DNA of 63,639 nucleotides, counting the filler, from Guillardia theta CCMP2712 (Eukaryota; Protista; Cryptophyta): the NCBI RefSeq assembly GCF_000315625.1. It is 7 parts of 7 records of this genome, joined end to end, with 100 filler letters (N's around TTAATTAATTAA, not from the genome) between each part and the next. Parts side by side here need not be neighbours in the genome. Positions count along the whole stretch, not along the records: positions 19,421 to 26,438 come from NW_005434227.1; 6 more parts are not named here. One strand, written 5' to 3'. Positions within the stretch are counted from its first letter, which is position 1, and each line of letters starts with the position of its first letter. The notes below the pieces were generated by a model. The model ran no database searches. It was not told where the DNA came from and saw only the letters and a list, made by a program, of their open reading frames with translations. This document shows positions 19,421 through 26,438 of this stretch, piece by piece. The position numbers and the translations under genes are program-made.

Positions 19421-22400
19421 CCTTGACCCCCCTGTTTCTCGACGGATCCTGCCGGCCGGGCCCGTCAGTAGACCGACTGCAGCCTTCAGCCCCGCCTCAG
19501 ACCCCCTGGAGGCCCGCCAGGAGGCTAAGTGTCCGGAGATTGGCCGGGGGCCTGATCTCTCCGGGCGGCCGTGACCGGTCAGCGGACCGTGTCAGCAGGC
19601 CCGTGACATGTCAGCCGGCTGACAGGGTCCGTGACCCGGCTGACAGGCTCACCTGACCGGTCACGTGACACATCACGTGACCGAGACAAGACTTTTTTAT
19701 ATCGCAGATCCAAAAACCCATAGGACATTTCTCCCAGGGGGAAGAAAACCTCCCTTGACCCCCCTGTTTCTCGACGGATCCTGCCGGCCGGGCCCGTCAG
19801 TAGACCGACTGCAGCCTTCAGCCCCGCCTCAGACCCCCTGGAGGCCCGCCAGGAGGCTAAGTGTCCGGAGATTGGCCGGGGGCCTGATCTCTCCGGGCGG
19901 CGTGACCGGTCAGCGGACCGTGTCAGCAGGCCCGTGACATGTCAGCCGGCTGACAGGGGCCGTGACCCGGCTGACAGGCTCACCTGACCGGTCACGTGAC
20001 ACATCACGTGACCGAGACAAGACTTTTTTATATCGCAGATCCAAAAACCCATAGGACATTTCTCCCAAGGGGAAGAAAACCTCCCTTGACCCCCCTGTTT
20101 CTCGACGGATCCTGCCGGCCGGGCCCGTCAGTAGACCGACTGCAGCCTTCAGCCCCGCCTCAGACCCCCTGGAGGCCCGCCAGGAGGCTAAGTGTCCGGA
20201 GATTGGCCGGGGGCCTGATCTCTCCGGGCGGCCGTGACCGGTCAGCGGACCGTGTCAGCAGGCCCGTGACATGTCAGCCGGCTGACAGGGGCCGTGACCC
20301 GGCTGACAGGCTCACCTGACCGGTCACGTGACACATCACGTGACCGAGACAAGACTTTTTTATATCGCAGATCCAAAAACCCATAGGACATTTCTCCCAG
20401 GGGGAAGAAAACCTCCCTTGACCCCCCTGTTTCTCGACGGATCCTGCCGGCCGGGCCCGTCAGTAGACCGACTGCAGCCTTCAGCCCCGCCTCAGACCCC
20501 CTGGAGGCCCGCCAGGAGGCTAAGTGTCCGGAGATTGGCCGGGGGCCTGATCTCTCCGGGCGGCCGTGACCGGTCAGCGGGCCGTGTCAGCAGGCCCGTG
20601 ACATGTCAGCCGGCTGACAGGGGCCGTGACCCGGCTGACAGGCTCACCTGACCGGTCACGTGACACATCACGTGACCGAGACAAGACTTTTTTATATCGC
20701 AGATCCAAAAACCCATAGGACATTTCTCCCAGGGGGAAGAAAACCTCCCTTGACCCCCCTGTTTCTCGACGGATCCTGCCGGCCGGGCCCGTCAGTAGAC
20801 CGACTGCAGCCTTCAGCCCCGCCTCAGACCCCCTGGAGGCCCGCCAGGAGGCTAAGTGTCCGGAGATTGGCCGGGGGCCTGATCTCTCCGGGCGGCCGTG
20901 ACCGGTCAGCGGGCCGTGTCAGCAGGCCCGTGACATGTCAGCCGGCTGACAGGGCCCGTGACCGGCTGACAGGCTCACTGACGGTCACGTGACACATCAC
21001 GTGACCGAGACAAGACTTTTTTATATCGCAGATCCAAAAACCCATAGGACATTTCTCCCAGGGGGAAGAAAACCTCCCTTGACCCCCCTGTTTCTCGACG
21101 GATCCTGCCGGCCGGGCCCGTCAGTAGACCGACTGCAGCCTTCAGCCCCGCCTCAGACCCCCTGGAGGCCCGCCAGGAGGCTAAGTGTCCGGAGATTGGC
21201 CGGGGGCCTGATCTCTCCGGGCGGCCGTGACCGGTCAGCGGACCGTGTCAGCAGGCCCGTGACATGTCAGCCGGCTGACAGGGTCCGTGACCCGGCTGAC
21301 AGGCTCACCTGACCGGTCACGTGACACATCACGTGACCGAGACAAGACTTTTTTATATCGCAGATCCAAAAACCCATAGGACATTTCTCCCAGGGGGAAG
21401 AAAACCTCCCTTGACCCCCCTGTTTCTCGACGGATCCTGCCGGCCGGGCCCGTCAGTAGACCGACTGCAGCCTTCAGCCCCGCCTCAGACCCCCTGGAGG
21501 CCCGCCAGGAGGCTAAGTGTCCGGAGATTGGCCGGGGGCCTGATCTCTCCGGGCGGCCGTGACCGGTCAGCGGACCGTGTCAGCAGGCCCGTGACATGTC
21601 AGCCGGCTGACAGGGTCCGTGACCCGGCTGACAGGCTCACCTGACCGGTCACGTGACACATCACGTGACCGAGACAAGACTTTTTTATATCGCAGATCCA
21701 AAAACCCATAGGACATTTCTCCCAGGGGGAAGAAAACCTCCCTTGACCCCCCTGTTTCTCGACGGATCCTGCCGGCCGGGCCAGTCAGTAGACCGACTGC
21801 AGCGTTCAGCACCGCCTCAGACCCCCTGGAGGCCCGCCAGGAGGCTAAGTGTCCGGAGATTGGCCGGGGGCATGATCTCTCCGCGCGGCCGTGACCGGTC
21901 AGCGGACAGTGTCAGCAGGCCCGTGACATGTCAGCCGGCTGACAGGGGCCGTACCCCGGCTGACAGGCTCACCTGACCGGTCACGTACACATTACGTGAC
22001 CGAGACAAGACTTTTTTATATCGTCAGATCACAAAAACCCATAGGACATTTCTCCCAGGGGGAAGAAAACCTCCCTTGACCCCCCTGTTTCTCGACGGAT
22101 CCTGCCGGCCGGGCCAGTCAGTAGACCGACTGCAGCCTTCAGCCCCGCCTCAGACCCCCTGGAGGCCCGCCAGGAGGCTAAGTGTCCGGAGATTGGCCGG
22201 GGGCCTGATCTCTCCGGGCGGCCGTGACCGGTCAGCGGACCGTGTCAGCAGGCCCGTGACATGTCAGCCGGCTGACAGGGTCCGTGACCCGGCTGACAGG
22301 CTCACCTGACCGGTCACGTGACACATCACGTGACCGAGACAAGACTTTTTTATATCGCAGATCCAAAAACCCATAGGACATTTCTCCCAGGGGGAAGAAA

Positions 22401-25400
22401 ACCTCCCTTGACCCCCCTGTTTCTCGACGGATCCTGCCGGCCGGGCCCGTCAGTAGACCGACTGCAGCCTTCAGCCCCGCCTCAGACCCCCTGGAGGCCC
22501 GCCAGGAGGCTAAGTGTCCGGAGATTGGCCGGGGGCCTGATCTCTCCGGGCGGCCGTGACCGGTCAGCGGACCGTGTCAGCAGGCCCGTGACATGTCAGC
22601 CGGCTGACAGGGTCCGTGACCCGGCTGACAGGCTCACCTGACCGGTCACGTGACACATCACGTGACCGAGACAAGACTTTTTTATATCGCAGATCCAAAA
22701 ACCCATAGGACATTTCTCCCAGGGGGAAGAAAACCTCCCTTGACCCCCCTGTTTCTCGACGGATCCTGCCGGCCGGGCCCGTCAGTAGACCGACTGCAGC
22801 CTTCAGCCCCGCCTCAGACCCCCTGGAGGCCCGCCAGGAGGCTAAGTGTCCGGAGATTGGCCGGGGGCCTGATCTCTCCGGGCGGCCGTGACCGGTCAGC
22901 GGACCGTGTCAGCAGGCCCGTGACATGTCAGCCGGCTGACAGGGTCCGTGACCCGGCTGACAGGCTCACCTGACCGGTCACGTGACACATCACGTGACCG
23001 AGACAAGACTTTTTTATATCGCAGATCCAAAAACCCATAGGACATTTCTCCCAGGGGGAAGAAAACCTCCCTTGACCCCCCTGTTTCTCGACGGATCCTG
23101 CCGGCCGGGCCCGTCAGTAGACCGACTGCAGCCTTCAGCCCCGCCTCAGACCCCCTGGAGGCCCGCCAGGAGGCTAAGTGTCCGGAGATTGGCCGGGGGC
23201 CTGATCTCTCCGGGCGGCCGTGACCATTCTGGGGTCAAACCGCGTTGGTCTTTATTAACGCAAAAGAGGAATGCGTATGCTGTTCTCATAGGATACCGGT
23301 GGTAGTGTACCCCATGGTTTTTGAGGGGTGTTGCTCGGTAATATCAGTGGTAGGGGTGCTTCAAATTTTGAACTGGCGTGCCCATTTGTTTTAACGGCAA
23401 TGAATTGTTTATTCGAATCCGTGGTACAAACAGTTGTACTGAGTAACGGTTCATAACTGCTAATTTGTACCATCTAAAACAATTTTGATGACCCACCCTA
23501 TCAATGAGGGTGGGGAAACGCTCCCCATCATTCCCATCGTCTAATCGCACTCCGAGCCGTCATGCTGAGCCGCCGGGCGAGCACAGCAGCAAGCCTCCGG
23601 TCAGCGAGCTGCCACCATGAGCACAGGTGAAGAACCGCCAAGTAAGAACATGATCGCAAGGTACAATTGGCATCAAGAATCCAGCACATATTCTGACATG
23701 GTATTCTTGTAGAAGTGGATCAAGGCTGCATGAGTTCGTCATCCTACATTTCCAACGACTAAGTCAATCGTATCATCAATTTTCTCTTCAAGACTTCTGG
23801 GCTCTCAGAGTAATGTACTTTATCTGAAAAGTGAACTGAATAAAATAATCTGTAAGATAATGACGAGTCCGCTTAATTATGGTGCAATCACATCTCACTT
23901 GACTTACATCGTTGCTTCACATCATCAGAACAACTTTGATGATTTCTGAATCTTTGAAATATGCCAATTAGTTGACTCTCACGACGCTCTTGTTGATTCT
24001 TCCCTCCTCTCTTCAAACTCTCCTCATTCAGGTTATTTGCATGTTTGCATATTTGCTGAAACACATCAACTTTGCTTTGCCTCCCTAATGGTGGAGCTTT
24101 TGACGTCCAATTAAGCCTCAGATCATATCAGGGATCAAGACTCAAGCTTGTAAGCTGGCAGGCAAGAATCCATTGTGCGTTGCAACCAGACTGACATTAA
24201 TGTAGAATCAAGGTTGGAGGTGATATCTGATTTGACGTTTATAATTCATTCGAAGCGTTTATCTCAGGATGTCGAACTATCAGCAAATTGACACGGACTC
24301 CCAGACAATGATAATGACAACCACAATGTCATATGGGACTTCTCCAACTGCGCGCACAACAGAATGGAAGCACATCTGCCATCCAACACCGTGCGGTTGA
24401 GTTTGCTGTCTTGAAGAGGTTTCAATCTTGTTTGTCACAAAGAGGCAAGGCTTTGAGCATGTGGACATGGATATATACAAGACTATGCATCTTCACAAAG
24501 TGTTTTTAAGTCATGCAACAAGAGATGCATCATTCAAAGGCGGAGAAGTTCAAACATGATCTGAAGTCATATGGCACAGTGAAGCATCTCTCATAAATAT
24601 GATATCCCATCCAGCACATGAAGATGAAAGTCTGCATGGAATAAAGGTCTTGGACTTTTGTAATACGCTTCAGCTACAAGCATGCAGAATCTAGTTCTCA
24701 ACATCGCCAGGCTTTTGCTACCTGTGCACAACGATTAGAAAATGAACAATCCACAGAAGAACTCCATACCTGTGTGATGGAACGAGTTCATTTGCACCTT
24801 CTCCTCTCACAAAATACTTTGGAGTCTCTTCATGCTCGTGTGTGTTCGTGGTTTACTCGTCCCCTTCCATGGATGCGTTCAAAAATATGATCCAGACTTT
24901 GAAACAGATAATGGCATAATAACATTTTCACCAACCGACGCAGAGGGTTTGACGAAGAGAGATGTTGATGAGAGTCACCTGCTGCGAGTCACTGCAACTT
25001 GGGCTAACATGCTCGCACAAAACTCAAACACTGAAGACAAGGATCCGCAGAGAAGAGCTTCGCGATATGAGAGAAGAATGGCGAGGGAAGACCCACTGGG
25101 GTAGTGGGTGAAGGCGTGTAGAATTAAAACATTTTAGAAGGTACCAGGAAATAGGTGAAGCGACTACTCGCACTTTTAATCACAGTTTTGAACATGGTTT
25201 GAATTTCAACAGTACAGAATTTCAACCTGCGCGAATCACACGCCGTGTACCCCCATTTTCCCATGCACCACCCCCTTGAAAATATGGGACGAGAACCAAC
25301 GCGGTTTGACCCCAGAATGGACCGGTCAGCGGACCGTGTCAGCAGGCCCGTGACATGTCAGCCGGCTGACAGGGTCCGTGACCCGGCTGACAGGCTCACC

Positions 25401-26438
25401 TGACCGGTCACGTGACACATCACGTGACCGAGACAAGACTTTTTTATATCGCAGATCCAAAAACCCATAGGACATTTCTCCCAGGGGGAAGAAAACCTCC
25501 CTTGACCCCCCTGTTTCTCGACGGATCCTGCCGGCCGGGCCCGTCAGTAGACCGACTGCAGCCTTCAGCCCCGCCTCAGACCCCCTGGAGGCCCGCCAGG
25601 AGGCTAAGTGTCCGGAGATTGGCCGGGGGCCTGATCTCTCCGGGCGGCCGTGACCGGTCAGCGGACCGTGTCAGCAGGCCCGTGACATGTCAGCCGGCTG
25701 ACAGGGGCCGTGACCCGGCTGACAGGCTCACCTGACCGGTCACGTGACACATCACGTGACCGAGACAAGACTTTTTTATATCGCAGATCCAAAAACCCAT
25801 AGGACATTTCTCCCAGGGGGAAGAAAACCTCCCTTGACCCCCCTGTTTCTCGACGGATCCTGCCGGCCGGGCCCGTCAGTAGACCGACTGCAGCCTTCAG
25901 CCCCGCCTCAGACCCCCTGGAGGCCCGCCAGGAGGCTAAGTGTCCGGAGATTGGCCGGGGGCCTGATCTCTCCGGGCGGCCGTGACCGGTCAGCGGACCG
26001 TGTCAGCAGGCCCGTGACATGTCAGCCGGCTGACAGGGGCCGTGACCCGGCTGACAGGCTCACCTGACCGGTCACGTGACACATCACGTGACCGAGACAA
26101 GACTTTTTTATATCGCAGATCCAAAAACCCATAGGACATTTCTCCCAGGGGGAAGAAAACCTCCCTTGACCCCCCTGTTTCTCGACGGATCCTGCCGGCC
26201 GGGCCCGTCAGTAGACCGACTGCAGCCTTCAGCCCCGCCTCAGACCCCCTGGAGGCCCGCCAGGAGGCTAAGTGTCCGGAGATTGGCCGGGGGCCTGATC
26301 TCTCCGGGCGGCCGTGACCGGTCAGCGCACCGTGTCAGCAGGCCCGTGACATGTCAGCCGGCTGACAGGGTCCGTGACCCGGCTGACAGGCTCACCTGAC
26401 CGGTCACGTACACATCACGTGACCGAACAAACTTTTTA
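19421..26438. repeat. Tandem array of a 332-bp GC-rich unit, about 11.5 + 3.4 copies, open at both ends
   Basis: Near-identical units recur at 19665, 19996, 20328, 20660, 20989, 21321, 21653 ... 22982, then 25412, 25744 and 26076. Confidence 0.98.
23225..25319. mobile_element. Non-autonomous TIR DNA transposon (2,095 bp) inserted in the tandem array
   Basis: Perfect 25-bp TIR CATTCTGGGGTCAAACCGCGTTGGT at 23225-23249, reverse complement at 25295-25319. GAC is duplicated at 23222-23224 and 25320-25322. The array resumes in register. No ORF over 100 aa inside. Confidence 0.9.

Follow-up and report, generated by a model that had tools for sequence, protein, structure and literature searches.

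A 332-bp tandem repeat in Guillardia theta, probably a lineage-specific satellite, interrupted by a non-autonomous DNA transposon

The DNA analysed here (the window) is a stretch of 63,639 nucleotides joined from seven records of the cryptophyte Guillardia theta CCMP2712, assembly GCF_000315625.1. Positions 19,421 to 26,438 of the window, from record NW_005434227.1, hold a tandem array of a 332-bp unit and, within it, a 2.1-kb inserted element (Table 1). An earlier note on this piece had proposed a candidate centromeric or other functional satellite. Our analysis indicates that the array is probably a non-coding, lineage-specific satellite DNA, whose 332-bp monomers follow one another head to tail for 4.9 kb or more, are locally homogenised and are interrupted by a transposon.

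The array and its interruption

The 332-bp period was recovered by Tandem Repeats Finder in two blocks, with 11.5 copies at 19421–23225 (98% matches, no indels) and 3.4 copies at 25320–26437 (99% matches). Recurrence of one anchor word from the unit placed successive unit starts 329–333 bp apart, with a single gap of 2,430 bp. The satellite, with a GC content of 63%, makes up 4,923 of the 7,018 bp of the piece (70%), or about 14.8 units. After alignment, the mean pairwise identity among the 14 full units was 98.8%, and six of them were identical to one another and to the consensus, which bears out the roughly 15 near-identical copies described in the earlier note. The piece starts at a unit start, stops at about unit position 279 and contains no N, and at both ends the contig terminates inside the array, adjoining runs of N. 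Because of these breaks, the true array is longer than the 4.9 kb seen, as had been proposed. Contrary to the note, the repeat occupies only part of the piece; a 2,095-bp element, which the note did not report, separates the two blocks.

Two stretches differ from the other units in the kind of change that they carry. The unit at 21741–22073 has 13 differences, mainly transversions together with two homopolymer insertions (T6 to T7 and A5 to A6), and the contig end (26400–26438) has three 1-base deletions relative to the consensus within its last 40 bases. Long-read sequencing error seems a likelier source of both than real variation, and the true identity between units is therefore probably above 98.8%.

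Variants shared between units are largely local. 166G is found in units 3–4 and 43A in units 7–8, while 208G is common to units 1–3 and also present in units 12–13. The mean number of differences between units is 3.7 at lag 1 and rises to 4.3–5.0 at longer lags. No periodic variant pattern was seen across the aligned units, and thus there is no higher-order repeat. Near-identical units with variants common to neighbours fit the pattern left by local unequal crossing-over or gene conversion.

The element between the two blocks is set apart by composition, with GC falling to 40–50% between about 23300 and 25300. Removal of the element and one of the two GAC copies in silico left a 332-bp unit with exactly the consensus sequence. 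The insertion point lies inside the first of the two TGACCGGTCA palindromes of a unit, at unit positions 152–161. Because its removal restores the exact consensus unit, and because it carries perfect terminal inverted repeats (TIRs) and is flanked by a 3-bp duplication, the element is a non-autonomous class II TIR (cut-and-paste) DNA transposon, cleanly inserted. No transposase gene was found in it: the longest open frame has 108 aa and none of ten open reading frames (ORFs) from the element matched a credible Pfam family, and it is on these grounds that we call the element non-autonomous. If its composition mirrors the genome average, the GC content of the satellite is unusually high for this host.

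In its 3-bp duplication, TIRs, 2.1-kb size and lack of a transposase, the element resembles non-autonomous TIR transposons of the CACTA/EnSpm-, PIF/Harbinger-, Zator- and Academ-like types. A CACTA/EnSpm assignment was rejected on the termini, which read CATTC rather than CACTA, though the duplication is 3 bp, and PIF/Harbinger was rejected on the duplication, which is GAC and not TWA. Several superfamilies produce 3-bp duplications, and the element is assigned to none of them without an autonomous copy.

The ORF-like stretch near the right end of the element has relatives about 80% identical to it, as ORFs of 63–107 aa on four short JGI/ENA metagenome contigs. The conserved core of its translation, about 60–100 aa, reads NPDFETD...HLLRVTA.WA.ML. 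The homology is spread over three reading frames with an in-frame stop, and the copy in the window is therefore decayed. These metagenomic relatives indicate that the element family, or a gene fragment carried by the element, occurs in environmental samples. The ORF relatives matched no Pfam family, and no relatives of the element ORF were found in viral or GTDB contigs. An exact-word scan with the TIR gave no match in viral contigs or JGI metagenome contigs, nor did blastn of the element against plasmids. A match to UCR_hinge (ubiquinol–cytochrome c reductase hinge protein) at 24645–24887 on the plus strand was set aside; it scores 18.2 bits against a cut-off of 27.2 (E = 0.0026), has no sequence match in the PDB and is probably due to chance, a captured gene fragment being the remote alternative.

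Table 1. Features of the array, the inserted element and an example unit (positions along the window)
Feature	Positions	Strand	Description	Evidence
Satellite block A	19421–23224		11.46 units, cut by contig start	Tandem Repeats Finder (98% matches), unit starts, unit alignment
Satellite block B	25320–26438		3.37 units, cut by contig end	Tandem Repeats Finder (99% matches), unit starts, alignment
TIR element	23225–25319		2,095 bp, 44% GC	Composition, TIRs, ORF and Pfam scans
Left TIR	23225–23249	+	25 nt, begins CATTCTGGGG	100% complementary to 25295–25319
Right TIR	25295–25319	−	25 nt	
Left GAC copy	23222–23224		3-bp target-site duplication	Sequence; in-silico excision
Right GAC copy	25320–25322		3-bp target-site duplication	Sequence; in-silico excision
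Decayed ORF-like stretch	24832–25134	+	Within the element	Similarity to short metagenome ORFs
Example unit, positions 1–149	22406–22554		GC-rich (70%), without subrepeats; short hairpin-forming inverted repeats	Consensus, GC, fold
Example unit, positions 150–262	22555–22667		TGAC/GTCA half-site palindrome block, 113 bp	Motif counts, DNA fold
Example unit, positions 263–332	22668–22737		AT-richer part, 70 bp, 43% GC; T6, A5 and A4 tracts	

Architecture of the monomer

The monomer is divided into three parts, with GC contents of 70%, 66% and 43% from first to last. In the AT-richer part, the T6 tract begins at unit position 273 (22678–22683 in the example unit), A5 at 292 and A4 at 325, in agreement with the long GC-rich and short AT-richer parts, with these same tracts, that the earlier note had described.

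The central block is dominated by palindromes built on one half-site. It contains TGACCGGTCA twice, TGACATGTCA, the 16-bp TGTCAGCCGGCTGACA and GTCACGTGAC, and holds 13 of the 14 TGAC/GTCA sites of the unit, where dinucleotide-preserving shuffles predict about three per whole unit. By the same kind of shuffle, CGTGAC is expected 0.2 times and occurs six times, both strands counted, and five perfect 10-bp palindromes stand against an expected 0.36. Perfect palindromes in the monomer span 8–16 bp. The forms sharing the TGAC half-site are TGAC-N2-GTCA (three times), GTCA-N6-TGAC and GTCAC/GTGAC with a CACGTG core. The predicted single-stranded DNA fold of the block has an energy of −45.2 kcal/mol, compared with −26.0 for shuffles (z −6.9). 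At its end, a hairpin with a 10-bp stem and a 4-nt loop (22644–22667, unit positions 239–262) lies 10 nt upstream of the T6 run and is followed by GAGACAAGAC. On these motifs, the block looks like clustered binding sites of a putative dimeric protein; the shared TGAC half-site may equally reflect simple descent from a short subrepeat.

Folding of the whole unit as RNA also beats shuffles, with z-scores of −4.4 on the plus strand and −4.0 on the minus strand. Because the signal is alike on both strands, it points to DNA dyad symmetry and not to a strand-specific RNA. This bears on whether each unit could be the gene for a structured non-coding RNA of about 300 nt, of an undescribed family, with a TATA-like start in the AT-richer part and an end at T6 on the plus strand or at T5/T4 on the minus strand. 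Such a gene would account for the GC-rich 260 nt that fold far better than shuffles, for the position of the sole plus-strand T run of at least four, after the 10-bp-stem hairpin, and for TATAAAAAAG, which reads on the minus strand. The equal structure on both strands speaks for DNA palindromes instead. At E ≤ 1 the sole Rfam match was to a translation enhancer of plant viruses; its 21.5 bits fall short of the gathering score of 80, and it is a chance match to which the palindromes gave rise. A tRNA scan was negative. The small-RNA gene array that the earlier note had listed as an alternative thus lacks any Rfam match above chance, and we regard an RNA gene as very unlikely.

The unit length had been read as 2 × 166 bp, a dinucleosome period as in many centromeric satellites. 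No 166-bp sub-period exists in the monomer: base identity at offsets 164–168 is 0.23–0.28 (0.27 at offset 166), against 0.27 expected. Even the best self-offsets, 21, 34 and 62, reach an identity of only 0.33, and the two halves of the unit align in effect no better than shuffles (score 27, shuffle maximum 25). The 332-bp unit does not consist of two nucleosome-sized repeats, and the dinucleosome argument falls.

Coding potential, relatives and origin

A 107-aa open frame is present in every unit. It has no protein relatives and, since 332 is not a multiple of 3, it cannot read through the array; in DNA this rich in GC, such a frame is to be expected. Scans for bacterial promoters and terminators were negative. 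Exact-word scans gave no match for the monomer in IMG/VR or JGI metagenome contigs and none for its hairpin in GTDB genomes, and two units searched by blastn in plasmids and phages were likewise without a match. This lack of matches speaks for a lineage-specific repeat rather than contaminating bacterial, plasmid or viral DNA.

The same searches bear on a further group of explanations, in which the array would be a tandemly amplified mobile or rolling-circle element (a Helitron, a retrozyme or a ribozyme satellite), or else an assembly artefact or contaminant. Hammerhead-bearing satellites have units of about 330 bp, which the present monomer recalls, and the contig is made solely of repeats. 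However, the hammerhead core (CUGANGA ... GAAA) is absent from both strands, and Rfam contains no ribozyme family matching at E ≤ 1. No Helitron ends were found, the sole CTRR+T site lying at unit position 132 and not beside a hairpin. The rolling-circle element raised in the earlier note accordingly finds neither a ribozyme core nor Helitron ends. Plasmids, phages, GTDB genomes and viral contigs yielded no match that would point to a contaminant, and the clean transposon insertion with its target duplication argues for real chromosomal DNA. We give this group of explanations hardly any weight.

Somewhat more consideration is due to two alternatives from the earlier note. The array could be a subtelomeric repeat, or it could consist of subrepeats belonging to, or descended from, the intergenic spacer of the ribosomal DNA (rDNA). 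Both kinds of repeat typically have units of this size, copies numbering in the tens and little variation between units. A strong hairpin followed by a T-rich tract could also represent a terminator-like element of an rDNA spacer. Against this, neither an rRNA match nor a tandem telomere-type motif was found anywhere in the 7-kb piece, both flanks of the array lying outside the contig. It would also be unusual for a transposon to survive within an rDNA spacer under active homogenisation. A subtelomeric or rDNA-spacer origin appears unlikely.

Satellite identity and the centromere question

A satellite accounts best for these observations. The units are longer than 100 bp, arranged head to tail and highly identical, they contain no protein relative or known RNA gene, and the repeat breaks the contig at both ends; in these respects the satellite proposed in the earlier note stands. 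Local unequal exchange or gene conversion would keep the units uniform. A defective 2.1-kb TIR transposon entered one unit, duplicating 3 bp, and its presence suggests that the array lies in insertion-tolerant DNA, that is, in gene-free and probably heterochromatic chromatin. The TGAC block may either extrude hairpins or cruciforms (non-B DNA) or serve a dimeric DNA-binding protein, and apart from this palindrome block the sequence would offer no lead to a chromatin function. Several points weigh against a locally homogenised, non-coding satellite. The lag trend in unit differences is weak and partly driven by the two error-rich units, a gene for a structured RNA from some undescribed family could also explain the strong structure and the T runs on either side of the GC-rich part, and the evidence is confined to one 7-kb contig.

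Compared with plant and animal satellites with monomers of about 330–360 bp, the array is alike in being head-to-tail, near-identical and non-coding, in its A/T tracts, in breaking the assembly and in hosting a transposon. It differs in having no sequence relative in the databases searched, in its 63% GC, in a 332-bp monomer that is no nucleosome-sized dimer, and in the absence of a higher-order repeat.

Could this satellite be the centromeric one of the alga, with CENH3 nucleosomes on the monomer and dyad symmetries helping to specify the centromere? Such a role would fit the uniformity of the tandem array, the break it causes in the assembly and its tolerance of a transposon insertion, and GC-rich centromeric repeats exist (PMC4053949). 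In species without a sequence-specific centromere-binding protein, centromeric satellites are reported to be enriched in short dyad symmetries with a predicted capacity for non-B DNA (PMC5889037), and the monomer has strong symmetries of this type. The likeness extends to its many perfect 8–16-bp palindromes and to a hairpin energy far beyond that of shuffles. Unlike in those satellites, the palindromes here share one TGAC half-site, more in the manner of a protein-site cluster or a degenerate subrepeat. Dyad symmetry is not exclusive to centromeres and so is not diagnostic. Nor does the 332-bp length inform on a centromeric role, since monomer length, like GC content and motifs, is not conserved among centromeric repeats (PMC4053949).

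Other observations lower the case for a centromere. The absence of a 166-bp period removes the 2 × 166 argument, and there is no higher-order repeat, a feature common in centromeric satellites but not obligatory. The algal centromeres described in PMC11005252 and PMC11541908 are not satellite-based. Those of Chlamydomonas, Coccomyxa and Chlorella are transposon-rich, with LINE/L1 elements of the Zepp type (long interspersed nuclear elements) in the first two, and those of Cyanidioschyzon are short regions of low GC (PMC11005252), while Ectocarpus centromeres contain long terminal repeat retrotransposons, ECR (PMC11541908). The array resembles the Zepp clusters, the Cyanidioschyzon low-GC regions and the Ectocarpus ECR in being repetitive, gene-free DNA; theirs are transposon-based or short unique regions, whereas here the DNA is a tandem satellite. 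Because these algal centromeres are transposon-based or short and low in GC, the prior for a centromeric role is lower. The sequence neither supports nor refutes a centromeric satellite, which we consider improbable. The narrower proposal, in which the TGAC block of such a satellite would specify the centromere, through non-B DNA or by binding a dimeric centromere protein, is slightly less probable still.

As it stands, the locus adds one more species-specific satellite and a defective DNA transposon, useful for repeat annotation and for explaining the assembly break, and in itself unsurprising. If the satellite were centromeric, it would offer a handle on chromosome segregation, as a probe for fluorescence in situ hybridization (FISH) or a target for chromatin immunoprecipitation (ChIP), in an alga for which no centromere has been described, and would contrast with the transposon-type centromeres of other algae; the lower prior makes a centromeric role the more interesting if true.

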